Assembly (NCBI GenBank): GCA_950097015.1
Contig: CATNEN010000037.1
Location: forward strand, 2,046,001 to 2,110,000
Length of the DNA: 64,000 nt
Source: Macrostomum hystrix
Taxonomy: Eukaryota > Animalia > Platyhelminthes
Direction of reading: 5' to 3'
Under the pieces are notes generated by a model, which ran no database searches, was not told the origin of the DNA, and saw only the letters and a program-made list of their open reading frames with translations. This document shows, one piece after another, positions 2,622 to 54,000 of this stretch. Made by a program: the position numbers and the translations under genes. Position 1 is the stretch's first letter. Each line of letters begins with the position of its first letter.

Positions 2622-3434
2622 ACCAGTGGTACAGGGGATGGGTTAGCAGTGGCCTACAGAGCTGTAGGACCAGTGGTACAGGCATGGGTTAGCAGTGGCC
2701 TACAGAGCTGTAGGACCAGTGGTACAGGGATGGGTTAGCAGTGGCCTACAGAGCTGTAGGACCAGTGGTACAGGCATGGGTAAGCAGTGGCCTACAGAGC
2801 TGTAGGACCAATGGTACAGGCATGGGTTAGCAGTGGCCTACAGAGCTGTAGGACCAGTGGTACAGGGATGGGTTAGCAGTGGCCTACAGAGCTGTAGGAC
2901 CAGTGGTACAGGCATGGGTTAGCAGTGGCCTACAGAGCTGTAGGACCAGTGGTACAGGGATGGGTTAGCAGTGGCCTACAGAGCTGTAGGACCAGTGGTA
3001 CAGGCATGGGTAAGCAGTGGCCTACAGAGCTGTAGGACCAATGGTACAGGCATGGGTTAGCAGTGGCCTACAGAGCTGTAGGACCAGTGGTACAGGGATG
3101 GGTTAGCAGTGGCCTACAGAGCTGTAGGACCAGTGGTACAGGGATGGGTTAGCAGTGGCCTACAGAGCTGTAGGACCATTGGTACAGGGATGGGTTAGCA
3201 GTGGCCTACAGAGCTGTAGGACCATTGGTACAGGGATGGGTTAGCAGTGGCCTACAGAGCTGTAGGACCAATGGTACAGGGGATAGGTTAGCAGTGGCCT
3301 ACAGAGCTGTAGGACCATTGGTACAGGGATGGGTTAGCAGTGGCCTACAGAGCTGTAGGACCATTGGTACAGGGAATGGGTTAGCAGTGGCCTACAGAGC
3401 TGTAGGACCATTGGTACAGGGAATGGGTTAGCAG
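2622..3434. repeat. 46-bp minisatellite with internal palindrome CCTACAG-AG-CTGTAGG
   Basis: Period 46 (2715 to 2761); about 17.5 units. Confidence 0.95.
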
Positions 3435-3477
3435 CTATCCGCATGCAGACCTGATCCCTCAACTACTCAATATCCAG

Positions 3478-3710
3478 AGAACGAATGGAAGCTGGAGTTC
3501 ATGGTGAAGTTCTACCCGCCAGATCCCGAGAATCTGCGCGAAAACCTGACCAGGTACTACATGGCACTGCAGATTCGGCAGAACCTTATGGCCGAAACAC
3601 TGCCCTGCTCCTTCGTCACCTACATTATTCTGGGCAGCTATGTTCTTCAGTCTGAGGTTGGCGACTTTGATGTTCACGACGAAAAAATGAACACCTTGGC
3701 TTACCTGCAG
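3478..3710 (+). CDS. FERM domain exon (F1/F2 lobes)
   Basis: tatccag acceptor and cag|gtaaga donor; encodes WKLEFMVKFYPPDPENLRENLTRYYMALQIRQNL..LPCSF..LGSYVLQSEVGDFD, typical of band 4.1 proteins. Confidence 0.93.
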
Positions 3711-6700
3711 GTAAGACATTGTGGCCTTACCGTGTATATATTGCATTTTCAATATGCGAGTGATGTACAATTGGATGAATAAGGAAACATTGTACTCATA
3801 CACTCATGCAATTTAAATTTGGGGGCTCACTGTACATTTAATTTAGTATAGGTGGATAAAAAGGGTTCATTGTACATCCCCTGTAACATTCCAGCCATGC
3901 ATACTGTACATCGAATTAATTTACTTCCTGTGGTGCACATTGTATATTTAAAAAATGATCATTTTGGTGCACACTGTACATTCATGAAAAGTACATTCGG
4001 GTGCACACTGTACATTCAAGAAAAGTAAATTCTCGTGCGTACTGTACATTTATGAAAAGTACATTCTGGTGCACACTGTACATTCAAGAAATTTACATTC
4101 GGGTGCACAAGAAATTTACATTCCGATGCGCACTGTGCATCCATGAGAAGTACATTCTGGTGCACACTGTACATTCAAGAAATGTACATTCGGGTGCACA
4201 AGAAATTTACATTCCGATGCGCACTGTACATCCATGAGAGGTAAATTCTGGTGCACACTGTACATTCAAGAAACGTACATGTAAAAAAACTGCCTCCGCC
4301 AACTGAACTCCTTCAGGACTGCCCGTTCTGCCCGGAGGAATATCGCAACGTGCGCGAGCTGATGGAGCGAGTCAGCGAGCTGCACCGAACTCACGAAGGC
4401 ATGACACCGGAGGAGGCCGATCTGCACTTCCTGCAGAACGCCAAGAAGCTGGCTATGTATGGCGTGGACATGCACGAGGCCAAGGATAACTCCGGCGAGG
4501 AGGTCTTCGTTGGCGTCTACCACGGCGGTGCTCTGGTCTACCGGAACAGTCTGCGCATCAACCGCTTCTCCTGGCCAAAGATTTTAAAAGTGTCCTACAA
4601 GAGAAACGTTGTCAAGGTGTCGATTCGAACCGCTGAGAACGACCGCGATCTCAAATCCGAAATGCTGGTGGAATTCAAGTGCTCCACGCCCAAGCTGGCC
4701 AAGCGGCTGTGGCGGGCCGTGGTCGAGCATCACCAGTTCTTCCGGTGAGTGCGGCTTAACTCACTTTCGGATTCGATCGTCGTAAATAACGTAGCCATTT
4801 TAGCCAGTTAGTCTTCTACAAATAGTTTCACAGCCTATTTCCGAAAGTTCCTACTCGATTTAATCTAAACATCCTAGATAATACTTCGTAAGAGATGTTA
4901 AACTATTATTTAGCTATTTCGTACTCTACCATGATTTTACTGTTCATTGTAGCCTACTAACAGTAGGAGAGTAAATGAAAAAGCTTAATAACTTGCTGCC
5001 ATGCCACAGGCTAAAATCTTCCGAGAAGCCACAGAAGCCGCATATTCCGGGCACCTTCAAGGGCCGCTGGGGCACGGGAATGCAGAGCCAGCAGAATGAC
5101 CAGTCGGGCACCTACCCAGAGGTTCAGGTCACCTCGGACATGCGGAAGAGCTTCAAGAAGAAGAGTAAGCGCGGTTGTTTTTTTGACGCGATTGTTCTTT
5201 TATCTAATGTTGTATTATCATTCTATCATTATCGCTCATTATCACCAAGCTTCACCAATTAGAATCCACTAATCAACCATGCACTTCTCTTATTAAATAA
5301 TTTTCCCGAGCCCCGGTTATTCAAAAAACATGCTACACTTCATTTCCACTCACCCTTGATTATGTACCCGCCTCAATCCATTTCCTTCCCCCGAGCCCCG
5401 ACTCTTCAACCTCCTCACTCCATTTCCTTCCCCCGAGCCCCGACTCGTCAACCTCCTCACTCCACTTCCTTCCCCCTAGCCCGACTCTTCAACCTCCTCA
5501 CTCCACTTCCTTCCCCCGAGCCCCGACTCTTCAACCTCCTCACTCCACTTCCTTCCCCCGAGCCCCGACTCGTCAACCTCCTCACTCCACTTCCTTCCCC
5601 CGAGCCCCGACTCTTCAACCTCCTCACTCCACTTCCTTCCCCCGAGCCCCGACTCTTCAACCTCCTCACTCCATTTCCTTCCCCCGAGCCCCGACTCGTC
5701 AACCTCCTCACTCCACTTCCTTCCCCCGAGCCCCGACTCTTCAACCTCCTCACTCCACTTCCTTCCCCCTAGCCCGACTCTTCAACCTCCTCACTCCACT
5801 TCCTTCCCCCAGCCCCGACTCTTCAACCACCTCATTCCACTTCTTTCTCCCTCGTAACACAATGGATAAAATTCTACAAGGTAAAGAAAATTAAGAACCT
5901 TTTTATCAACTAAATTTAGTCCAACCTGTTGAATTAACTATGTACGCTACACTTTGTCTCTCCCATTAATTATTAGAAGGGCAAAAATTAATTATTAGAA
6001 AGACGCAGCGGCAAAATTTTGGGAAACCGGCCTTTAAAATTTGATTGGTTCAGTAAGGTTTAGTCGTTGCTAGTTTTGGTAAACCAGTTGGGTCACGTGA
6101 CTTGGCTTCTGAAATGGAATTCTAGTCACCTAGAAGTGGCATTCCGATTGGAAAAATATTGGAACAGTGATAGTCAATTAAAATCTTAAAGGCCGATTTC
6201 TAAAGAAATACCGTGTTGTGTCGTCAATTTTATTAGCTCATATTTTTAGCACTTTGCACCAATATTTTCGCACCAGCTAATTTTTTTAATCTAATCGGTT
6301 GCTCACTGCAGACGTGCCGACCAAGGCCAGAGTAGACGAAGGATTTGACGGTCTGTTGAGGCTACATTTATTCATAGGAATTCAATGGCCAATACTTGAC
6401 CACAGACTTAGTCTGAATTATTGCTAATGCTTTGATTTACAAGTTAGTGATAAAAACCCATAACGAACATCAATCACAGCTTTTTTGTATTAAAACCTGC
6501 CTGCTTCAATAAATATCGAATCAAACCTAAAAATATCGAAATAATAAAAGGGCAACTTTTGCTAAATTAATTTTTTGTGTGTGTTTTGCTTCCTAATTAG
6601 ACTAATAATGCGACTGAAGTACGCGTGTAAGTTCTCACTGCTCTTTTTTGGTTAGTGGCAAAAGCGGCATATTTAAAATTGCTTTCAGACGAATGAAATC

Positions 6701-9700
6701 GATTGCATTTTTTTGCGTTTAACAGCCGATCTACCATTATCGCAAACTCACCCCAAACCAGAGAGCCGATTGAATTTTGTTGGTTGACGTTTATTCTTGC
6801 CCAGAGTTGTTGTATGGGGAGAGCGGAGAGGGAAGCGCGGAGAGGGAAGAGCGGAGAGGAAAGAGCGGAGAGGGAAGAGCGGAGAGGGAAGAGCAGAGAG
6901 GGAATAGCAGAGAGGAAAGAACAGAGAGGAAAGAGTGGAGAGCGGAGCGGAGAGGGAAGAGCGGAGAGGGAAGAACCGAGAGGGAAGAACCGAGAGGGAA
7001 GAGCGGAGAGGGAAGAACCGAGAGGGAAGAACCGAGAGGGAAGAGCGGAGAGGGAAGAACCGAGAGGGAAGAGCAGAGAGGAAAGAGCGGAGAGCGGAGC
7101 GGAGAGGGAAGAGCGGAGAGAGAAGAGCCGAGAGGAAAGAACCGAGAGGGAAGAGCGGAGAGGGAAGAACCGAGAGGGAAGAACCGAGAGGGAAGAACCG
7201 AGAGGGAAGAGCGGAGAGGGAAGAACCGAGAGGGAAGAGCAGAGAGGAAAGAGCGGAGAGCGGAGCGGAGAGGGAAGAGCGGAGAGGGAAGAGCCGAGAG
7301 GAAAGAACCGAGAGGGAAGAGCGGAGAGGGAAGAACTGAGAGGGAAGAACCGAGAGGGAAGAACCGAGAGGGAAGAACCGAGAGGGAAGAGCCGAGAGGG
7401 AAGAGCAGAGAGGAAAGAGCGGAGAGCGGAGCGGAGAGGGAAGAGCGGAGAGGGAAGAATTGAGAGGAAAGAGCGGAGGGGGGAGAGCGGAGAGGAAAGA
7501 GCGGAGAGGGAAGAGCGGAGGGTGAAGAGCGGAGAGAGAAGAGCCGAGAGAAAAGAACCGAGAGGATAGAGCGGAGGGGGAAGAGCGGAGAGGGAAGAGC
7601 CGAGAGGAAAGAACCGAGAGGAAAGAGCGGAGGGGGAAGAGCGGAGAGGAAAGAGCGGAGAGGGAAGAGCCGAGAGAGAAGAACCGAGAGGGAAGAACCG
7701 AGAGGGAAGAGCGGAGAGGGAAGAGCCGAGAGGGAAGAGCGGAGAAGGGAAGAGCTGATAAAATCTGGGAATGGGGCGACATGGTAGGGGATTCAAAGAC
7801 GCTAATCTACGCTTATTAAATACATTGAATCCAACATAGTGATGAAGATTGCCAATCTGCTGTCATCGCAGTCATAAGTGACTTGTTTGATTTGCTCCAA
7901 AAAATCTTTGCCCCCTCAGACGATGCCTACAACCGCGACCAACGAGCCGATCAACATGGCGCCGGGACCTCCGGTTTGCCAGACGATATGTACGCGAGCT
8001 CCGGTAGGCAGGGCGCCGGTATGACGCAGCCGATGCCGGTTAGCCGGCACGAGCAGTACGACCGCAGGCCTGAGCTGGGGGTCGACAGGCCGGCGCGTTG
8101 GCGAATGAACCCGTCGGACGCCGATGCCTATCTCGCCGCCGGCATGGATCCGGCGCGATCGGCCGGCGCCTGCCCGGCCGGCGTGCACGACTGGCAAGGC
8201 TGTCGGTCCGACCGGGGCATCCGGGCTTCGGCCGGCGGCCAGTGGTACTACGAGACCACCGTGCAGGGCGAGGGGGCGCCCGACAAGCCGGTGGATGCCC
8301 GCATCGGTTGGGCCGACGGAAATGCAGATCTCAACCTGGGACGGGTAAGCGGGGCTTGGACCAGGGCCTGTTTGAAACTGACCAGGGCCTGTCTGAAACT
8401 GACCAGGGATTGTCTGAAACTGACCAGGGATTGTCTGAAACTGACCAGGGCCTGTCTGAAACTGACCAGGGATTGTCTGAAACTGACCAGGGCCTGTTTG
8501 AAACTGACCAGGGCCTGTCTGAAACTGACCAGGGCCTGTCTGAAACTGACCAGGGATTGTCTGAAACTGACCAGGGCCTGTCTGAAACTGACCAGGGATT
8601 GTCTGAAACTGACCAGGGCCTGTTTGAAACTGACCAGGGCCTGTCTGAAACTGACCAGGGATTGTCTGAAACTGACCAGGGCCTGTTTGAAACTGACCAG
8701 GGCCTGTCTGAAACTGACCAGGGATTGTCTGAAACTGACCAGGGATTGTCTGAAACTGACCAGGGCCTGTTTGAAACTGACCAGGGCCTGTCTGAAACTG
8801 ACCAGGGATTGTCTGAAACTGACCAGGGCCTGTCTGAAACTGACCAGGGCTTGTCTGAAACTGACCAGGGCCTGTCTGAAACTGATCGTGGGTTGAAGTC
8901 ACATCGGGGGCAAGTCACAGCGCCTTGAACACATTGCAGGACAACCATGGCTGCGGCTTCGGAACGGATCCGTCGGGTCGTCACGCCCAGAAGACCCTGG
9001 CTGGCATCTCCGATCAGTACGGCGTCGAGCTCGTTGCTGGCGACATTGTGGGCGCTTTCCTCGACCTTGACAATGGCACTGTTGCCTACGCCGTCAACGG
9101 ACGCGAGCTCGGACCAGCGCATCAGCTGCCGAGTGACTTCTTTACCCCGCCCGGAGGCGGCTCTGGCGAAAAAGGCAAGAAGTCGCGCAACGGCGCCAAT
9201 TCGAACTCCGGCGGCCCGCCGGCTGTCTACCCGGCTGCCTGCCTGCGCGACGGCGCCGGGGCCGAGTGGAATTTCGGCGACGATCCGTCCAGACCGCTCG
9301 CTTACCCGCCTGGCGGTCCTTGGCGGCCAGTTGGCCAGGCTCCGGCCGGCAAAACCGCGGAAAATCCGCGCAACTGGCTCCTAAATCCGCACGATACGAG
9401 CGGGCCTGGCCTGCAGCTGGGACCGGATCAGCTGTCCGCCCAGGGACAGCTGGGATTCGGCTGGCAGGGCGTCCGTTCCAATAAGGTTGGTTAAGTATCT
9501 TGTCAGCTTTCAAGATTTTCATACCACAAGAAAGAACTTATTCAGCCATCTAATTGCACATCGTTACTGCCTAGGTGAGGTTTTATCCACCTCACTCCAA
9601 TTCCTTCCCCTACCCCAGTTTCTGCACCCACCTCACTCCAATTCCTTCCCCTACCCCAGTTTCTGCAACCACCTCACTCCAATTCCTTCCCCTACCCTAG

Positions 9701-12700
9701 TTTCTGCACTCACCTCACTCCAATTCCTTCCCCTACCCCAGTTTCTGAACCCACCTCACTCCAATTCCTTCCCCTACCCCAGCTTCTGCACCCACCTCAC
9801 TCCAATTCCTTCCCCTACCCCAGTTTTTGCACCCACCTCACTCCAATTCCTTTCCCCTACCTCAGATTCTGCACCCAACTGATTCCATTTTCTCCATCTT
9901 GCCGAGCTTTTGCTACCACCTCATTTTTAAGTTCTTTAACCCTCTCAGAATTTTTTCAGCAATAACCTACCAACCCAACCATTCAACTGTCCAGGGCCTA
10001 AAAGGCAGCGCTGGTGGCCGATTCTACTGGGAGGCGGAGCCGCTCGAGGTTGGTGGCCTCGGTCGCGTCGGCTGGACAACTGAGTCCGGCTCCTTGGACG
10101 TTGGCCGCGACGCCAACGGCTGGGGCTACGGCGCCGATCACGAAGGCTTCGGGCTGGCCGGCAATCAGGGCAAGAAACTTTTCGACGATGAAATCGAAGC
10201 CTATGGCGAGCCTTTCGCCAAGGGCGACGTAGTCGGCTGCTTCGTAGACTTCGACAACGGCCAGTTGCAGTTCGCTAAGAACGGCGTCCGGTTCGGTCCC
10301 GCATACAACCTGCAGCAGGACGTGCTGGAGCGAGAATCCTTTTTCCCGACCGTGGCCATGAGGGACCAGACATTGGACGTAAATCTCGGCCAAAGGCCGT
10401 TCCACTATCCGCCCGGACCGGAATGGACGCCAGTCTGTCTCGCGCCGGAGTCCAGCGTCCAACGCTCCGGCCGCGTAGGCATTTCTGAGGTACGAAATTC
10501 GCAGCAGAATTTCCTTCATTTCTACTCATAGTAGTGCCGTTGGAAGATGTCGAAATTAGGTTTTTATTTTTGTTTCACTTTGCCGTTCCTACTATCAGTA
10601 GTCTCAATTGGGCAGCGCGAAAATTTAAACTTGCAGCGAAAGTCAACAAAGAAAGGCTTCAAATATGCCGACCCGGCAACTGTGCGACAGAGCCTCATCA
10701 TTCGGGTTAGATTAATCCCATATATTAATCGGAGAAGTGCTTTGAGCACCGAGCATGCAAATACAATATTTTCCAGTTTTTTGCGCTTTAGTCTAGCTTT
10801 GCTATTTCAGCTTTGCTTGCCTACAAGCTAATGATGAGCTGATAAGCACATTGTATCTATACTTTTCTCGCAAATCTTACTAATTGGAGTTGGCACAAAT
10901 CGATAAATATTACACCTGACCCAGTAATGCCATACTTATATAAGGCGAGAAAAAAGCGAACGCCAAATACCCTACTAACAGTAGTGCAGTTGGAAGAGCG
11001 AAGCCTAACTTATAGGCGGCCAGTGAATTAAACCAGCCCCTTTAAGTCCTCGGAAGCCTTTTGGAATCGTTTTAAAAATTTTTTTACTTGTCTTTTCATT
11101 GTATTTTTATTTACTCAGAAAACTGGTCTCGACATCAGCTCGCCATAGATGATTTAGTAAACATTTACTTGCTTGAAACACCTTGCAGAATTCCAATCTG
11201 CCGGCTGTGGACCAGAAGTACGATATGATCCGCGAGAACAAGCCGCAGATCAAGGCTCCGCCACGCGAACCGCCTGCCGCATCCATCACTGTACACGAGA
11301 GCCGCACAGAAGTGAGTCTCAGTATTTAAACCGGAGGTGCCCATTTAGCCTGTAGTTAAATTAAAGTTTGCCGTTTGCCTTTGCACGGACCAAGGAAAGA
11401 GATGAAGGCCATCCTGAAGAGGTTTTTAAAGGAGCGGAATCGCAGCAGACTCAACCAAAGACGATGCACAAAGACGCGATCATTGTGTCTACTGTAAATT
11501 ATTTATATTCAGCTATTCAAGCAGCTTTTGCGAACCTAATTTCGGAACCTAATTTGATTATTGCCTAAACTGTTTTAAGCGCAAAGAAACCTTTGCATGT
11601 TTATAATAAGCATTTAACAGTATTTTACAATTATACCTAAACTATTGCACCATCTACACGTATTTCTGTGAGCAGCGTCTGGAACTTAAAATTGTGTGGA
11701 ATTGACGCTACAGTAAGGGATTTAAGTGAGGTGGGTGTAATACGGTCGCTAGGGTAAGGAAGTGGAGTGAGGTGGGTTTGTGTTGTGTGCGTTGGGCCGG
11801 GTGTGAGGCGTTGTATGGGGGTGGGGCGGGTGTACACCAGCCATGCGTGCTCTGAGCGGCGAGGTTTCACCAGCCGTCTGCGCGCGTGGCTTGGTCCTCT
11901 CGTCCCTTCCCCTCAGGCATCTAAGTCGTCCCCTGGTTTGGTCTGCTCTGTGCGTGTGCGGGCCTGGGGTGAGAGGCACTCCGACTGCCGTCCCCTTCCC
12001 CGCTTGGCTTGCTGCTGTGTATGAGGTGCCTGAGTCCAGGGTCCAGATGGCGCGATGGGCGACTCCCGCCTAGTTCGCCGGCCTGGGGGCATGCCGTTCC
12101 TGTGCTTGTGCGTCAAGTGCCCAAGGCCCCCTGCAATTAAGTAAAGAGGTGGATGTCGAATGCTTGTGTAAGGTATTTAAGTGAGGTGGGTGTAAATACG
12201 ATCGCTAGGATAAGGAAGTGGAGTGAGGTGGGTGTAAAATTGACGCTAGGGTATGGATGTGGAGTGGGGTGGGTGTAGAATAGACGCTAGGGAAGGGAAG
12301 TGGAATGAGGTAGGTGTATTACGGTCGTTTGGGTAAGGGAGTTGGAATGATTTAGAGACTAGAAGACACTGGAGTTAGTGAAGTGAAGGTCGGTGTAGAA
12401 TGGACACTAGGGTTAAAAAGCGCAGTGAGGCGGGGTAGAAATAGCGGCTGGATACTAGATTTCGTGTCGATTTACATCGATGTGGGTAATACGAGTATAT
12501 TGAATTTATAAATTTGCTAGTAAATATCCATGGCTGTTATTTTTCTGAGTGGGCAAACGAACCCGCTTGTAAGTATTTAAATAAAAAGTCAAGACCTTCT
12601 CAGGAGAAACGTATTCTTTAAGGTATAAATGATCAGACTTCAGAAGCTTTTACCGACGAAGAAAACTGATTTATGCATCTCAAAAATGCTCGAATAAAAT

Positions 12701-14331
12701 GCGTTTGTCTCTACTATGAAGTAGACTATAATGAATATTTAACAGGAGAAAAAATAAGGTGAAGCTATTTTAAAACTCAACAACTTTCTGCCAATTTCTC
12801 AGAGCGAGCACATGGGCGAGCCAGAAGAAGAGATTGTAACCTACGTTGACGAGCACGGCAACACCATCACGAAGAAGGTTATTCGCAGCAAGAAGACGCG
12901 CCAGGTGGTCACTAGCAAAGTGATTGAGACTCGAGGCCCCATGCCGGATAGCAACCCGACCACCACTGAGCACTTGGAGAAGTCGGTGAGTACCCGGATG
13001 TACCGAGTAGAGAAATCACAGTGGCGTGCATGATATGCACGTAATTAGCTCGTAAAGGTTTAAAAAACTAATGATTTCTTAAGTTTTGAAAAGTTGCTTA
13101 AATTACTTCAATATCTAAACCTTCTTAGTTAACGAAATTGGCTTAAAATTTACTACGAGTACTTAGTTAACGTTTTAAAAAAGTTAACGATAAAATCTGA
13201 CAGAATTTCATTTTAACGAATAAAAATATGCTTCAGCAATGCCCATCGCTGAAAATCAGATATCGTGGGTCATTCTTATGAAACTAAAACGAGGGGGAGA
13301 GAGCGACGGAAAGCTGCAGGGGAAAAACCCATGACATTTCCATGATACTCGTTTCTTAGACCAAATCTGGCGCCTCCGGCCTGACCCGCAAGGAGACCCG
13401 AACTGGCCGGCGCAACCTGGCCCTGTACGAGGATGGCGGCGAAGAGGACGATGTGAGACCCGCTTTCTACTTTTTTCATTCTAGCTAATTTTCTGTTTGA
13501 ACTTTTTTTTGGTTTCATGAATGAAAATTGCATAGGAAGAAATGGACTAGCTAGTACTCGGTTACGTCATACATAAGAGCTAAAAATAGCACCTGACTCG
13601 GGTTAGCAGGCATTTCCCTTAGACAGTGTACACACTGAGCTAAAAATAGCACCTGACTCGGGTTAGCAGGCATTTCCCTTAGACAGCGTACACACTGAGC
13701 TAAAAATAGCACCTGACTCGGGTTAGCAGGCATTTCAATTGGGCAGTGTACACACTGAGCTAAAAATAGCACCTGACTCGGGTTAGCAGGCATTTCCCTT
13801 AGACAGTGTACACACTGAGCTAAAAATAGCACCTGACTCGGGTTAGCAGGCATTTCCCTTAGACAGCGTACACACTGAGCTAAAAATAGCACCTGACTCG
13901 GGTTAGCAGGCATTTCAATTGGGCAGTGTACACACTGAGCTAAAAATACGAGCGTAGCAACTGAATAACTAAGGCAGTGTACAGCCAGAGCTAAATATTG
14001 CTTCATACAGTTTCATGCAATGTTTCATGCCGACCTTGTGGCAGAAATTTAGAGCAGGATATTTTAAAACATACAGACAGAAGACGAGCAATTGTAAAGT
14101 GTCTCATCTGAGCAACCCTCTTAAGACAAATCAGTTCATTAATCTTGCTAGTATTATTAATAAAATAAAACAACGATTTTAAAATTAATCGACCAGATGC
14201 TGAGCGACATCATCTATCAGCAGACTGGCCTGAGTCGGCAGGACAAGATCATGGATGAGAATGTGAACGATTTCAGCATGTCCACCATTGACTCCAGGAA
14301 GACTCCAGCCAAGCATGAGAGCGAAATCTGA
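3478..14331 (+). CDS. Band 4.1/Coracle-like protein, 5'-partial: FERM - FA - SPRY - SPRY - degenerate 4.1 C-terminal region (about 937 aa encoded in window)
   Basis: Exons 3478-3710, 4317-4744, 5010-5164, 7920-8344, 8940-9485, 9995-10489, 11189-11311, 12803-12985, 13360-13452, 14197-14331 (TGA). All junctions are GT..AG and phase-consistent (0,2,1,0,0,0,0,0,0). FERM motifs VKFYPPDP, LGSYVLQSEVGD, YGVDMH, FSWPKILKVSYK, AKRLWRAVVEHHQFFR. The FERM F1 exons were not found in the window. Confidence 0.85.
3965..4282. repeat. Degenerate GGTGCACACTGTACATTC.. intronic repeat
   Basis: Recurrent motif at irregular spacing. Confidence 0.8.
4317..4744 (+). CDS. FERM domain exon (F2/F3 lobes)
   Basis: cttcag acceptor and cg|gtgagt donor; [32 protein letters not shown]...RINRFSWPKILKVSYKRN...AKRLWRAVVEHHQFFR. 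Confidence 0.95.
5010..5164 (+). CDS. FERM-adjacent (FA-like) exon
   Basis: ccacag acceptor completes the split Arg codon; GTFKGRWGTGMQSQ resembles the FA motif GSKFRYSGRTQ; a|gtaagc donor. Confidence 0.8.
5375..5846. repeat. 42-bp C-rich minisatellite (CCTCACTCCACTTCCTTCCC core family)
   Basis: Period 42; same core as 9586-9876 and, inverted, 11713-12440 and 14662-14897. Confidence 0.95.
6817..7755. repeat. Purine-rich ~14-bp repeat GAGCGGAGAGGGAA / GAACCGAGAGGGAA
   Basis: Direct reading; almost no T on the + strand. Confidence 0.95.
7920..8344 (+). CDS. Linker plus N-terminal part of DDX1-type SPRY domain 1
   Basis: ccctcag acceptor (phase 1) and cgg|gtaagc donor; WRMNPSD...DWQGCRSDRGIRASAGGQWYYE...RIGWADGNADLNLG parallels the DDX1 SPRY start (MNPYD..WHGCRATKG..KHYYE..RVGWS..LDLG). 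Confidence 0.85.
8357..8884. repeat. 21-bp minisatellite GACCAGGG(CC/AT)TGT(C/T)TGAAACT filling the intron that splits SPRY1
   Basis: About 25 units between donor 8345 and acceptor 8939. Confidence 0.95.
8940..9485 (+). CDS. C-terminal part of SPRY domain 1 plus start of SPRY domain 2
   Basis: ttgcag acceptor and aag|gttggt donor; GCGFG..YGVELVAGDIVGAFLDLDNGTVAYAVNGRELGPAH..VYPAACL..AEWNFG..YPP, followed by WLLNPHD..GWQGVRSNK. Confidence 0.87.
9586..9876. repeat. ~43-bp C-rich minisatellite (CCTCACTCCA core family)
   Basis: Direct reading; about 7 units. Confidence 0.9.
9995..10489 (+). CDS. Body of DDX1-type SPRY domain 2
   Basis: gtccag acceptor and gag|gtacga donor; GRFYWE..GRVGWTT..SLDVGRDANGWGYG..GKK..YGEPFAKGDVVGCFVDFDNGQLQFAKNGVRFGPAY..FFPTVAM..VNLG..FHYPP. 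Confidence 0.92.
11189..14331 (+). CDS. Last four coding exons of the FERM/SPRY gene (11189-11311, 12803-12985, 13360-13452, 14197-14331)
   Basis: Four phase-0 exons with cag/tag acceptors and gtgag donors, open frame ending ..KHESEI*. The T/V/K/E-rich segment and TKSGASGLTRKETR..EEDDMLSDII weakly resemble the band 4.1 C-terminal domain. Confidence 0.75.
11713..12440. repeat. Degenerate G-rich copies of the 42-bp family, interrupted by a GC-rich insert (11778-12167)
   Basis: GAAGTGGAGTGAGGTGGGTGTA cores at 11713-11777 and 12168-12440. Confidence 0.8.
13568..13947. repeat. 60-bp minisatellite, six units arranged as a 180-bp trimer x2
   Basis: Variant order A,B,C,A,B,C (cccttagacagt / cccttagacagc / caattgggcagt). 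Confidence 0.95.
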
Positions 14332-14661: not shown

Positions 14662-14897
14662 GTGGAGTGAGGTGGGTGTAAAATGGACACTAGGGTGAGG
14701 AAGTGGAGTGAGTTTGGTGCAGAATTTGCGCTTAGGTTAAGGAAGTGGAGTGAGGTGGGTGCAGAATTTGCGCTTAGGTTAAGGAAGTGGAGTGAGGTGG
14801 GTGCAGAATTTGAGCTTAGGGTAGGGAAGTGGAGTGAGATGGGTGCAGAATTTGCGCTTAGGGTAGGGAAGTGGAGTGAGGTGGGTGCAGAATTTGC
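14662..14897. repeat. 42-bp G-rich minisatellite (same family, inverted)
   Basis: GGAAGTGGAGTGAGGTGGGTGCAGAATTTGCGCTTAGG units. Confidence 0.9.
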
Positions 14898-18779: not shown

Positions 18780-25043
<6,264 letters not shown>

Positions 25044-35487: not shown

Positions 35488-36134
35488 GTCAGGAGCCAGG
35501 ATGCAGCCGTTCAGAAAGTAGTCAAATTAATTATTGACTTCAGCTTCAATTAGGGGGACAAGAATTGAAGTTAGAGAAAAGGGCAATTAGGGGGAATCTT
35601 ACCTACTTGGGCGCTGACTAGCATACACAATGCTCTTCGATTAGGAAGTTCCGATTTGCTCAGACGAAATGATTAGAAATTAAAAAAAGACAATTTTAGC
35701 ACTCTCTAGCAGAATATTCCTATCAGTCTTCTTCTTTTAGCGCGAAAAAAGCGAAACAGTTGAAGAAAATCTCCAGATGAAATTCAATCTTACTGATGGC
35801 TCATATTCCATAGTTTCAGAGCGTAGAAAGGTCGAGACCATCAATCAACAGGATTGAGAGTGAGCTGGAATTGAATGACATCTGGCCCTCATTCACTTGC
35901 CGCTGCAAACTTGCCCAGTGTTGACAGCTGACTTATACTCAACAAACTGCCTGACGAGATGAAACAACGAGGCGACACGTGAGCGATTTTGTTAAACTGA
36001 GATTATTGCACGAGCTGCTGTACTAGTGCAACGAAGTTTTCTTCTACTGAAGGATTTTCTACTACTGTGTCAATTTCCCATTTCTAGGTCAATATGTCCT
36101 TTTCTTCATTCTTCTCTGTGTATTTCCTTTCTCC

Positions 36135-37548
36135 CGCTACCTGTCTCCCCATCTCTACCTGTCTTCTATCTCTACCTGTCTCCCATCTCTACCTGTCTCC
36201 CATCTCTACTTGTCTCCCATCTCTACTTGTCTCCCATCTCTACTTGTCTCCCATCTCTACCATGTATCCTATCTCTACTTGTCTCCCATCTCTACCTTGT
36301 CTCCCATCTCTACCTAGTCTTCCTATCTCTACCTGTCTCCCATCTCTACCTGTCTCCCATCTCTACCTGTCTCCCATCTCTACCTGTATCCTATCTCTAC
36401 TTGTCTCCCATCTCTACCTGTCTCCCATCTCTACCTGTCTCCCATCTCTACCTGTCTCCCATCTCTACTTGTCTCCCATCTCTACCTGTCTCCCATCTCT
36501 ACCTGTATCCTATCTCTACTTGTCTCCCATCTCTACCTGTCTCCCATCTCTACCTGTCTTCTATCTCTACCTGTCTCCCATCTCTACCTGTCTCCCATCT
36601 CTACCTGTCTCCCATCTCTATTTGTCTCCCATCTCTACCTATCTCCCATCTCTACCTGTCTCCTATTTCTACCTGTCTCCCATATCTACCTGTCTCCCAT
36701 CTCCACTTGTCTCCTATCTCTACTTGTCTCCCATCTCTACTTGTCTCCCATCTCTACCTTTCTCCCATCTCTACTTGTCTCCCATCTCTACTTGTCTCCC
36801 ATCTCTACTTATCTCCCATCTCTACTTGTCTCCCATCTCTACTTGTCTCCCATCTCTACCTGTCTCCCATCTCTACCTGTCTCCTATCTCTACTTATCTC
36901 CCATCTCTACTTGTCTCCCATCTCTACCTGTCTCCCATCTCTACCTGTCTCCCATCTCTACTTATCTCCCATCTCTATTTGTCTCCCATCTCAACCTGTC
37001 TCCCATCTCTACCTGTCTCCCATCTCTACCTGTCTCCCATCTCTCCCTGTCTCCCATCTCTACCTGTCTCCCATCTCTACCTGTCTCCTATTTCTACCTG
37101 TCTCCCATATCTACCTGTCTCCCATCTCCACTTGTCTCCTATCTCTACTTGTCTCCCATCTCTACTTGTCTCCCATCTCTACCTGTCTTCCATCTCTACT
37201 TGTCTCCCATCTCTACCTGTCTCCCATCTCTATTTGTCTCCCATCTCTACCTGTCTCCCATTTCTACCTGTCTCCCATCTCTACTTGTCTCCCATCTCTA
37301 CCTGTCTCCCATCTCTACCTGTCTCCCATCTCTACTTGTCTCCCATCTCTACCTGTCTCCCCATCTCTACCTGTCTCCCATCTCTACTTGTCTCCCATCT
37401 CTACCTGTCTCCCATCTCTACTTGTCTCCCCATCTCTACCTGTCTGCCATCTCTACTTGTCTCCCATCTCTACCTGTCTTCCATCTCTACTTGTCTCCCA
37501 TCTCTACCTGTCTCCCATCTCTCCCTGTCTCCCATCTCTACCTATGTT
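36135..37548. repeat. 17-bp pyrimidine-rich minisatellite CTCCCATCTCTAC(C/T)TGT
   Basis: About 83 units. Confidence 0.97.
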
Positions 37549-37981
37549 TCCATCCCTCCGGAAAGAAACGAAAGTTATTAAGCAACGTAGGCAATTGTAT
37601 CGTTTTCTTAAAATAACTTCACTTCCTTATTTAGCTGTGGAATAATTCTATACAGTTTATTCATCCTGTCAAAATGGAAATCCTAAAAATTTGTTACGCA
37701 GCACAACGGAGCAATGTGAAAACGCATTGATAACTTGCTACATCAAGCTGCAGACATTGAAACTATTCTATTGATTTTCAGTCCAGCACTTCGGCGCCAA
37801 AGTTAAAATATTCGCTACCGCCTATGCTACATTATACAGATCAACTGTATACTTACAGACTCGCAGGAAGTTAAAAATTAAAATTTCACTTCTAAATTTT
37901 ATATCAGAAGCCTTTTAAAAGATTTGCAGCTATAGTGCTGCTTGCAATAGCTTCACGAATTTTGAACTGCACCTGATGAAT

Positions 37982-38447
37982 TAGCTGAATGGTGCCTGAG
38001 GTATTGGCTGAATGATTCCTGAGGTATTGGCTGAATGGTGCCTGAGGTATTGGCTGAATGGTGCCTGAGGTATTGGCTGAATGGTGCCTGAGGTATTGGC
38101 TGAATGGTGCCTGAGGTATTGGCTGAATTGTGCCTGAGGTATTGGCTGAATGGTGCCTGAGGTATTGGCTGAATGGTGCCTGAGGTATTGGCTGAATGGT
38201 GCCTGAGGTATTGGCTGAATGGTGCCTGAGGTATTGGCTGAATGGTGCCTGAGGTATTGGCTGAATGGTGCCTGAGGTATTGGCTGAATGATGCCTGAGG
38301 TATTGGCTGAATGGTGCCTGAGGTATTGGCTGAATGGTGCCTGAGGTATTGGCTGAATGGTGCCTGAGGTATTGGCTGAATGGTGCCTGAGGTATTGGCT
38401 GAATGGTGCCTGAGGTATTGGCTGAATGGTGCCTGAGGTATTGGCTG
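37982..38447. repeat. 23-bp minisatellite GGTATTGGCTGAATGGTGCCTGA
   Basis: About 20 units. Confidence 0.97.
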
Positions 38448-51000: not shown

Positions 51001-54000
51001 TGTGGAGGTGGAATGATTATATAGGAATAGTGTATAGCTTAACTCTATAGTCTATGGCAAAAGTTCACGAAGAAACGGCTAACTAATACGTCTGACAATA
51101 AACTCTTGTTCAATAAGACACTCACAATTAATTTTTTTTAATTCTATGGCAAAGCCCTAGTCCCAGTCAAACAAGTTTTTAAAATAGTCTATGACCAAAC
51201 CCTAGTCCATCAATTCAAGCTAGATTTTATTTGGAATAGTCTATAACCTGGTTGAATATTCAGGTAGATAATTAATACAAAGTAACGGTTATCTATGGCT
51301 AAGAATCATGCCCACACTTACAGCCTTATCCGGCATTGGAGTATCCCGATAGCCGTCAGTGTCGCAATAGACATTATATTCGTGAACGTGCCTCTCGCAA
51401 AGTGAGCAACCCTTAGCCTGCAGGTCGCCGCCGCAGCAGCTATAGATCTGTTGGACACCAGCTCCGGGCATTCGCCTACTATAGGCCCGGCCGTAGTGAT
51501 AGCAGCACTGGCCTGGCGGTATTGATAATTGTGGTCGCTGCAATAGGAAGGCCGAGCCGCAGCGGACGCACAATCGTTCCAAAGGATTAGCCGGGGGCGC
51601 GTAGGGCAGCGGCGGCAGGTTGGGCGGATAGCGATTATCGGCTAGCTGGGCTGGGGTCATGGCGTATTTTAATAGATGCTTGTGCAATCGTTTGTCGGAA
51701 AGTTGGCTAGCCTCTTCAGGCTGCTGCTGACGCTGTTTCTGATTGCCAGTCGAGTCGGGTCCGGAAGCGCGAACGCGTTTAATGGCCAAAATGACAGCGT
51801 TTAGGTAGACATTGCGATTCGCGCTGCGCTCGTAGCATTCCAGCTCTAGTTGCTGGGCTCGTCTACTAGCCGAGGATCCGGCGTCTGCGGACACCCTAGC
51901 GCGGTCTGCGGACACAATCAGACGGCATTCCTCGGCTAAGCGGTCCAGATAGCGCTGTCGGACAACATCCGGAATCTTGTTAGCAACGGAGCCAGGTAGG
52001 GGACTGGCAGCCACGGCTACTATGATTGGCGGACAAGCTGCTGAACTGCCCGACGATGAGGCCAAGGCCGCCGATAGGGAGGATGGGGCGCGAACTTTGC
52101 CCTGGCTGAGCAGGGCGGATGGATTAGCGGCCAGCTGTTGAGCACGTCGGGCCACCTGCTCGGAGGGCGTCATCCGACGAACTCCGGAGCATGCTGGGGG
52201 ACCGGAGACGGTGAAATGCGGTAAATTACTAAACTGTAACTTTAAATGTTAAGACGACAAACTATTGACGTAAGGACGGATTGGGGGGAGGGGAAGAATT
52301 AAGGGATTGAGAGAAAGGGGAAGAAAGGAGGGATTGATAGGAAGGGGAAGAAATGAGGGATTGAGAGGAAGGGGAAGAAAGGAGGGATTGGGATAAAGGG
52401 TAAGAAAGGAGGGTTGGGAGGAAGGGGAAGAAAGGAGGGTTGGGAGGAAGGGGAAGAAAGGAGGGTTAGGAGGAAGGGGAAGAAAGGAGGGTTGGGAGGA
52501 AGGGGAAGAAAGGAGGGTTGGGAGGAAGGGGAAGAAATGAGGGATTGAGAGGAAGGGGAAGAAATGAGGGATTGAGAGGAAGGGGAAGAAAGGAGGGTTG
52601 GGAGGAAGGGGAAGAAAGGAGGGATTGGGATAAAGGGTAAGAAAGGAGGGTTGGGAGGAAGGGGAAGAAAGGAGGGTTGGGAGGAAGGGGAAGAAAGGAG
52701 GGTTGGGAGGAAGGGTAAGAAAGGAGGGTTGGGAGGAAGGGGAAGAAAGGAGGGTTGGGAGGAAGGGGAAGAAAGGAGGGTTGGGAGGAAGGGGAAGAAA
52801 GGAGGGTTGGGAGGAAGGGGAAGAAATGAGGGATTGAGAGGAAGGGGAAGAAATGAGGGATTGAGAGGAAGGGGAAGAAAGGAGGGTTGGGAGGAAGGGG
52901 AAGAAAGGAGGGTTGGGAGGAAGGGGAAGAAAGGAGGGATTGAGAGGAAGGGGAAGAAAGGAGGGTTGGGAGGAAGGGTAAGAAAGGAGGGTTGGGAGGA
53001 AGGGGAAGAAAGGAGGGTTGGGAGGAAGGGGAAGAAAGGAGGGTTGGGAGGAAGGGGAAGAAATGAGGGATTGAGAGGAAGGGGAAGAAATGAGGGATTG
53101 AGAGGAAGGGGAAGAAATGAGGGATTGAGAGGAAGGGGAAGAAAGGAGGGTTGGGAGGAAGGGGAAGAAAGGAGGGATTGGGATAAAGGGTAAGAAAGGA
53201 GGGTTGGGAGGAAGGGGAAGAATGGAGGGTTGGGAGGAAGGGGAAGAAAGGAGGGTTGGGAGGAAGGGTAAGAAAGGAGGGTTGGGAGGAAGGGGAAGAA
53301 AGGAGGGTTGGGAGGAAGGGGAAGAAAGGAGGGTTGGGAGGAAGGGGAAGAAAGGAGGGTTGGGAGGAAGGGGAAGAAATGAGGGATTGAGAGGAAGGGG
53401 AAGAAAGGAGGGTTGGGAGGAAGGGGAAGAAAGGAGGGTTGGGAGGAAGGGGAAGAAATGAGGGATTGAGAGGAAGGGGAAGAAAGGAGGGTTGGGAGGA
53501 AGGGGAAGAAAGGAGGGTTGGGAGGAAGGGGAAGAAAGGAGGGTTGGGAGGAAGGGGAAGAAATGAGGGATTGAGAGGAAGGGGAAGAAAGGAGGGTTGG
53601 GAGGAAGGGGAAGAAAGGAGGGTTGGGAGGAAGGGGAAGAAATGAGGGATTGAGAGGAAGGGGAAGAAAGGAGGGTTGGGAGGAAGGGGAAGAAAGGAGG
53701 GTTGGGAGGAAGGGGAAGAAAGGAGGGTTGGGAGGAAGGGGAAGAAAGGAGGGTTGGGAGGAAGGGGAAGAAAGGAGGGTTGGGAGGAAGGGGAAGAAAG
53801 GAGGGTTGGGAGGAAGGGGAAGAAATAGGGGGTCGGTGGCAGAGCGGTTAACGCGTTTGCCACTCGCACCACAGTCCCTAAGTTCGATTCCACGGCGAGG
53901 CCACATTTATTTGGGGCGCAGCCGCGGAGAGAAGGCTTGGGGGCTTGTCGTGCAATTTACGCCCTTGAGGGCCAACCTCCAAGGCACAGTGAGAGTGTAC

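Follow-up and report, generated by a model that had tools for sequence, protein, structure and literature searches.

We analysed a window of 64,000 nucleotides from the flatworm Macrostomum hystrix (GenBank assembly GCA_950097015.1, contig CATNEN010000037.1, here C37, positions 2,046,001 to 2,110,000 of the forward strand), which holds most of an intron-rich gene on the + strand. The predicted protein of ~1,090 residues combines a FERM domain of the band 4.1 type with two SPRY domains in tandem, both of the type found in the RNA helicase DDX1. Contigs assembled from public sequencing runs show that the FERM domain, both SPRY domains and the C-terminal exons are carried in frame by one expressed mRNA. 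Overall, we consider it probable that this is a 4.1-type FERM protein which captured its DDX1-type SPRY early in flatworms and which acts as a cortical adaptor. As a variant of the 4.1 family, the gene is conserved and apparently specific to flatworms; databases already contain it, in part under wrong names, whereas it is undescribed in the literature that we searched.

Gene structure and transcript evidence

The exons in the window were searched one by one, with the database orthologue P0001 standing in for the whole protein. P0001 is an RNA-derived protein of 1088 aa from a related species; it is collinear with every exon in the window at 75-90% identity (tblastn), and Pfam finds in it FERM_N, FERM_M and FERM_C, followed by two SPRY stretches. 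Together with the transcript contigs described below and an alignment of 16 flatworm sequences, this search gave the following coding exons (window coordinates). The window itself is preceded by the FERM_N exons, at C37:2040988-2045029, ~1-5 kb before its first base.

~3449..3710, + strand: FERM central-lobe exon (Pfam FERM_M, E 8e-9), 90% identical to P0001 residues 131-211 (tblastn); acceptor position approximate (near 3449), donor clear (after 3710)
4317..4744, + strand: end of FERM_M and the whole of FERM_C (Pfam FERM_C, E 1.5e-20); ends carrying 2 bases; matched by an RNA loose end
5010..5164, + strand: post-FERM linker exon without a match to any Pfam family, covered by RNA contigs over 5009-5164; ends carrying 1 base
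6312..6350, + strand: optional micro-exon of 39 nt (13 in-frame codons), defined by contig joints and GT/AG sites
7920..8344, + strand: SPRY exon A, with contig joints at 7920 and 8344; matches P0001 residues 380-561 and the 16-sequence alignment; encodes ~57 linker residues followed by the leader of SPRY1 (WRMNPSD...WQGCR) and the first half of its core
8940..9485, + strand: SPRY exon B (Pfam SPRY, E 6e-7), with joints 8344>8940 and 9485>9995; holds the second half of SPRY1, a loop insertion, a conserved inter-domain linker and the SPRY2 leader (WLLNPHD...WQGVRSNK)
9995..10489, + strand: SPRY exon C (Pfam SPRY, E 3e-18), with the SPRY2 core and C-terminal strands; ends in phase 0, and RNA contigs continue into 11189
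11189..11311, + strand: exon after the SPRY block, 41 codons, phase 0/0; RNA loose end in all four runs; P0001 residues 912-949
12803..12985, + strand: C-terminal tail exon 1, with a motif, GEPEEEIVTYVDEHGN..TKK, conserved in the flatworm family (alignment); P0001 residues 948-1012 (tblastn)
13360..13452, + strand: C-terminal tail exon 2; P0001 residues 1013-1045 (tblastn)
14197..14331, + strand: last coding exon, with the conserved motif D-x-L-N-x-A/I-I...T-x-L (alignment) and the stop codon at 14329-14331; P0001 residues 1043-1088 (tblastn)

In the DNA, every intron of the gene reads GT..AG, and the phases close exon by exon: 2 bases are carried into 5010 and 1 into 7920, and none out of 8344, 9485, 10489 or 11311. 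The two SPRY leaders, W-R-M-N-P-S-D...W-Q-G-C-R and W-L-L-N-P-H-D...W-Q-G-V-R, are conserved in the 16 aligned flatworm sequences.

For the transcript evidence, assembled contigs of four public runs from two studies (X1, X2, X5 and X6) were aligned to window positions 5000-10999. The records of these runs carry no RNA label, and we read the contigs as RNA-derived because they are spliced. In X1 and X2 (study P1) the exon ending at 5164 is joined directly to 7920 and the micro-exon is skipped; in X5 and X6 (study P2) the micro-exon is included, through the joints 5164>6312 and 6350>7920. Within the SPRY block, the joint 8344>8940 is present in X5 and X6, and 9485>9995 in X6 and X2. Before 5009, the contig letters match the end of the FERM_C exon; after 10489 they match, in all four runs, the start of the exon at 11189, so that the joint 10489>11189 is read from loose-end letters. 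One single contig (record 1 of X1) spans FERM_C, exon 5010-5164 and SPRY exon A, and another of 1978 nt (record 20 of X6) spans SPRY exons A to C plus 733 nt beyond. No joint 5164>11189 was seen in the contigs of the four runs. The three SPRY exons together measure 1466 nt, and skipping them as a block breaks the reading frame. FERM, both SPRYs and the C-terminal exons are thus carried by one expressed mRNA, in frame. An earlier note on this DNA, which was made from the sequence alone, had proposed that three exons splice in phase between the exon ending at 5164 and the C-terminal exons. The contigs bear this out, and its outer limits of 7920 and 10489 are exact to the base. The RNA check that it suggested across 5164-7920 and 10489-11189 gives the joint 5164>7920, directly or via the micro-exon, and loose ends that match 11189.

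The third-codon-position GC content (GC3) is uniform, at 0.64-0.80, across the FERM, SPRY and tail exons, which argues against a recent or foreign insertion. A foreign origin of the GC-rich SPRY exons was considered and ruled out, their GC3 being the same as that of the FERM and tail exons.

The SPRY domains and their relation to DDX1

Both SPRY domains are of the DDX1 type, being closest to the DDX1 SPRY by sequence and by fold. Among PDB sequences, exon C matches the DDX1 SPRY (4xw3) with an E of 2.2e-23, the next family being RanBP10 (E 3.9e-9), and exon B matches 4xw3 with an E of 1.3e-10, with the SPRY2 leader aligned to DDX1 residues 19-57. The picture is the same within the M. hystrix genome, where, of all SPRYs that do not belong to the family, the DDX1 exon on contig C1 comes closest (2.8e-28) and the others score 1e-5 or weaker. 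The reading of the two modules in the earlier note, each opening with a DDX1-like leader, is confirmed by these matches and by the Pfam SPRY hits in exons B and C. A search of the Atlas with exon C returned generic SPRY clusters only.

With regard to fold, the SPRY tandem of an orthologue was modelled by AlphaFold (AF2) with the 16-sequence alignment, giving a mean predicted local distance difference test score (pLDDT) of 84 and a predicted template modelling score (pTM) of 0.80. The best Foldseek matches of this tandem model were 4xw3_A and 4xw3_B, with TM scores of 0.91-0.93, root-mean-square deviations of 1.4-1.8 Å and 34% identity, followed by ryanodine receptors (RyR). Overall, flatworm and DDX1 SPRYs are 34-46% identical. 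They have in common the long N-terminal leader and the C-terminal strands, and they are nearest neighbours in our trees. They differ in arrangement: DDX1 has a single SPRY inserted in its RecA1 domain, whereas the flatworm gene has two in tandem and is without helicase motifs. The SPRY1 of Macrostomum differs further from the DDX1 SPRY by a disordered loop insertion. This insertion, a Gly/Ser/Lys-rich stretch of ~25 residues encoded in exon B (window ~9141-9222), is predicted to be disordered, with a pLDDT <50 at model residues 162-185. In the alignment it is carried by this gene, by P0001 and by the M. lignano protein P0168, and is absent from the paralogue P0169 and from all neodermatans.

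The earlier note had also seen no helicase motifs near the SPRY exons, and a DDX1 query indeed matches contig C37 at the SPRY alone, with no match to the helicase part elsewhere on this contig. Neither DEAD nor Helicase_C was found by Pfam in any family member. An intact DDX1 exists elsewhere in the genome, as the note had asked to be confirmed: a complete, collinear and intact-looking gene lies at C1:24591872-24597026.

Using exon C, we made an exhaustive HMMER search of 1.84 billion representative sequences and examined the best 150 hits, 58 SPRY domains of which belong to helicase-bearing proteins. The origin of the flatworm SPRYs was addressed by quick trees under a site-heterogeneous posterior mean site frequency (PMSF) model, with 108 and 54 SPRY domains. 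In both, all flatworm FERM-SPRYs form one clade, with support by the Shimodaira-Hasegawa-like approximate likelihood ratio test (SH-aLRT) of 94 (108 domains) and 95 (54 domains). The SPRY2 of Macrostomum, as encoded in the window, groups with neodermatan SPRY2 (support 88-90). The flatworm clade stands beside the animal DDX1 SPRYs, represented by the DDX1 of the same genome, nematodes and a snake (support 81-90), with algal and other DDX1 SPRYs further out. Proteins with several SPRYs per chain, such as RyR (the next structural match after DDX1) and protist proteins of kinase, EF-hand and ankyrin types, are similar in this respect to the flatworm protein, but their SPRYs fall outside the group of DDX1 and flatworm domains in the PMSF trees and they have no FERM. 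Since both copies lie in one clade beside the animal DDX1 SPRYs, the trees fit, with moderate support, a single capture from an animal DDX1 that would have been followed by tandem duplication before the split of Macrostomum and Neodermata.

Relation to band 4.1 and distribution in flatworms

The FERM domain is of the 4.1 type, its best matches in the PDB being 4.1B (8e-88) and 4.1R (2e-78), ahead of FARP (2e-53) and ERM (1e-31). The other hallmarks of band 4.1 went undetected. The earlier note had called exon 5010-5164 an FA exon, but Pfam finds no FA domain (PF08736) in this exon at E up to 0.01, nor any at E up to 1 in residues 350-430 of P0001 or in eight family members. The note had also listed a C-terminal domain (4_1_CTD, PF05902) among the parts of band 4.1 proteins, and Pfam detects none in the tails of this family. 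A scan of the own genome for 4_1_CTD found no match anywhere, SPRY-less 4.1 control loci included, and is hence uninformative. The tail has no match among PDB sequences; its first hit in the Atlas feature search was a 4_1_CTD cluster (score 0.76), which we treat as a lead only. The family alignment shows conservation of the tail motifs GEPxxE..Y.DE.G and D..LN.AI...T.L. The spectrin-actin-binding (SAB) domain, a feature of vertebrate 4.1 that is absent from Coracle, was not detected by Pfam in any family member (E up to 1). A FERM of 4.1 type with the other hallmarks undetected indicates, as far as sequence comparison goes, that the gene product is a divergent 4.1-type paralogue and not Coracle itself.

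Two SPRY-less 4.1-type loci in the same genome, C8:3412855-3414623 and C5:3427719-3430457, are candidates for the conventional 4.1/Coracle orthologues. No SPRY lies within ~13 kb upstream to ~25 kb downstream of them, and their FERM domains score 245 (C8) and 234 (C5) bits against human 4.1B, compared with 210 for the SPRY-bearing FERM over the same region. The twin SPRY is hence no feature common to all flatworm 4.1-type genes. In a whole-genome scan for FA, weak matches were found just downstream of the C8 and C5 FERMs and none at the C37, C3:87xxxx and C34 loci, which carry the SPRY-bearing genes. The protein shares with EPB41, EPB41L1-3 and Coracle a three-lobed FERM and an overall plan in which this N-terminal domain is followed by a variable middle and a conserved tail at the C-terminus; unlike in these proteins, the middle is filled by two SPRYs, and FA, SAB and 4_1_CTD are undetected by Pfam. 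Joining a 4.1-like FERM to an unrelated module is also seen in FARP1/2 (FERM and RhoGEF), PTPN3/4 (FERM, PDZ and phosphatase) and MYLIP (FERM and RING), which are next-best FERM matches; to our knowledge none of them carries a SPRY, and among the best 150 SPRY hits FERM occurs only in the flatworm proteins. Modular additions to FERM proteins are known and SPRY is a common binding fold; the gene is not a new kind of molecular system.

The top 11 of the best 150 hits (1e-112 to 4e-37) are all flatworm proteins, and no protein outside flatworms with both FERM and SPRY was found among the 150. By Pfam, FERM_N, FERM_M and FERM_C plus two SPRYs are present in P0001, P0002, P0005-7, P0168-172 and P0195. 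The design is seen in Macrostomum lignano, Clonorchis, Dicrocoelium, Echinostoma, Paragonimus, Echinococcus, Hydatigera, Mesocestoides, Schistocephalus, Cichlidogyrus and Protopolystoma, that is, in Macrostomum, trematodes, cestodes and monogeneans; a word search contributed M. lignano BOX15_Mlig026758g1 and Mlig018785g1, the Band 4.1-like entries of Clonorchis and Echinococcus granulosus, and Hydatigera taeniaeformis. The M. lignano protein matches exon C with 88% identity. In the M. hystrix genome itself the design is found, complete and with its parts in the same order, at three paralogous loci, on C37 (the window gene), C3 and C34. The C3 paralogue (C3:878350-880974, minus strand) has far fewer introns, one frame of 913 codons running from FERM_M through SPRY1, where the window gene has at least five introns. 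Macrostomorpha are the earliest-branching rhabditophoran lineage, and the presence of the design in Macrostomum would thus date it to the base of Rhabditophora at least.

The public names of these orthologues vary: 'Band 4.1-like protein 3' in Clonorchis, 'Band 4.1-like protein 2' in Echinococcus granulosus and 'FERM domain-containing protein' in others. Two entries are named as DDX1 or 'DEAD box helicase 1, partial' (Clonorchis sinensis GAA30691.2 and Cichlidogyrus casuarinus KAL3319268.1). Both (P0003 and P0007 in our list) consist of FERM and twin SPRY without a helicase domain, and their naming is an annotation error spread by SPRY similarity. Literature searches on FERM and SPRY combined with band 4.1, flatworm or parasite names returned no relevant paper. 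The suggestion in the earlier note of an architecture without characterised precedent is therefore upheld in so far as it is undescribed in the literature searched, but the architecture is conserved across flatworms and had already been deposited in databases.

Proposed history, function and alternatives

In the history that we propose, a 4.1 paralogue of an early flatworm would have acquired the DDX1 SPRY as a copy inserted in its variable middle, where the domain would then have duplicated, both events preceding the split between Macrostomum and the parasitic flatworms. By analogy with other 4.1 proteins, the FERM domain may dock on the tails of membrane proteins and on lipids. The tandem SPRYs come after a short linker with the optional 13-residue micro-exon, and are followed by a tail of ~180 residues with a conserved, unclassified motif. 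According to the AlphaFold model, the twin SPRYs may pack as one rigid unit and form an added protein-binding platform. This pair occupies the position that the spectrin-actin-binding region has in vertebrate 4.1, and the protein as a whole probably works as a cortical adaptor.

Several points weigh against this reading and bear on the alternatives to it. The RNA evidence consists of assembled contigs rather than individual reads, and comes from runs whose records do not list them as RNA. Contigs also drop rare variants, so a SPRY-less isoform could escape notice; moreover, the SPRY exons are flanked by FERM-side and tail exons of the same strand, and there is an in-frame ATG in exon A. The SPRY exons might then be a separate gene nested in an intron of a 4.1 gene, or be confined to a minor isoform of a gene whose main product is SPRY-less. 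We regard this as highly improbable, because the contigs of the four runs join FERM_C to 5010-5164, the latter to 7920, and 10489 to 11189, all in frame and with no joint that bypasses the block, because such a bypass would shift the frame, and because continuous FERM and twin SPRY proteins are in the databases from more than 10 flatworm species and are encoded by three paralogues of this genome. Concerning the origin of the SPRYs, an approximately unbiased (AU) test under LG+F+G4 does not reject a topology in which the DDX1 SPRYs form one clade without the flatworm ones (p 0.43). The tree topology varies with the model, and the starred branches do not force nesting, so that a nested position inside DDX1 is not secured. 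These results, together with the fact that hnRNPU-type SPRYs were neither among the PDB hits nor included in the trees, would allow the twin SPRYs to come from another lineage (hnRNPU-like, RanBP9/10 or protist multi-SPRY) or from an older ancestor, with shared ancestry accounting for their likeness to DDX1. Such an origin appears unlikely to us, given that DDX1 clearly leads all other outsiders, whether in the PDB (2e-23 vs 4e-9), in the own genome or in fold, that the W-x-M/L-N-P-x-D leader is common to flatworm SPRYs and DDX1, and that both models place the flatworm clade next to the SPRYs of animal DDX1, apart from the multi-SPRY proteins. Furthermore, among the best 150 hits the architecture occurs only in flatworms, as opposed to SPRY-bearing DDX1, which extends from algae to animals. 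The capture and duplication of a DDX1 SPRY, as put forward in the earlier note, therefore stands in part: both copies are of DDX1 type and form one clade, but their placement inside or beside the DDX1 clade is not secured.

The remaining points concern the protein family and its function. Pfam finds no FA, SAB or 4.1 CTD, and the FERM alone ties the protein to band 4.1. The rigid packing of the two SPRYs is read from the pTM value alone, and even the DDX1 SPRY has no known ligand (PMC4555926; PMC8668186), its molecular function being stated as unknown (PMC8668186). The DDX1 SPRY has a positive patch that is conserved, and has been put forward as a putative platform for protein interactions (PMC4555926). 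In view of this description and of the domain's descent from DDX1, the pair could be thought to bring the partners of DDX1 to the membrane skeleton, be it the tRNA-ligase complex of RTCB or RNA granules, a coupling that the earlier note had raised. However, a DDX1 fragment without RecA1 and SPRY still assembles the tRNA ligase complex, via its C-terminal region (PMC8668186). The DDX1 SPRY being dispensable for this assembly, the proposed RTCB link is without support, and since flatworm and DDX1 SPRYs share only 34-46% of their residues, retention of a ligand is not assured. We consider this recruitment very doubtful and the coupling a conjecture. A more general form of the idea is that the twin SPRY keeps the specificity of the DDX1 SPRY patch and tethers a DDX1-type partner, for example a ribonucleoprotein or RNA-processing component, to the cortex via the 4.1 scaffold, which we judge to be unlikely as well. 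If it were true, the protein, being experimentally tractable by RNA interference and transgenesis in Macrostomum lignano, would offer a way to find the binding partner of the DDX1 SPRY.

Under the history that we favour, namely early capture of a DDX1 SPRY by a 4.1-type protein, the gene would represent a clean and ancient case of domain shuffling, in which part of an RNA helicase was transferred to an adaptor of the membrane skeleton and duplicated there. The design would then have been kept in the flatworm lineages sampled, from the free-living Macrostomum to liver flukes and tapeworms. The family is present in major parasites of humans and livestock, Clonorchis, Paragonimus, Echinococcus and Dicrocoelium among them; since it was also restricted to flatworms in the best 150 hits, it is a candidate marker for cortical or tegumental biology specific to flatworms. 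It also provides an indirect way of approaching what the DDX1 SPRY domain does, and the public entries misnamed as DDX1 call for correction.

A separate feature of the locus is the abundance of minisatellites, which are found in nearly every intron of the gene (2622-3434, 3932-4280, 5371-5851, 6816-7755, 8359-8885, 9587-9923, 13577-13948 and 14662-14897). The arrays have periods of 14-91 nt, and their copies match one another at 74-100%. Those at 5371-5851 and 9587-9877 share a related unit of 41-42 nt (CCACCTCACTCC...TTCC...), which is found as its reverse complement at 14662-14897. The array at 6600-7800 is also covered by low-depth RNA contigs. Elsewhere in the window, the strand composition is extreme in three stretches, with an AT skew of 0.63 at 20001-22000 and GC skews of -0.62 at 36001-38000 and 0.80 at 52001-54000; these are probably further simple or satellite repeats.

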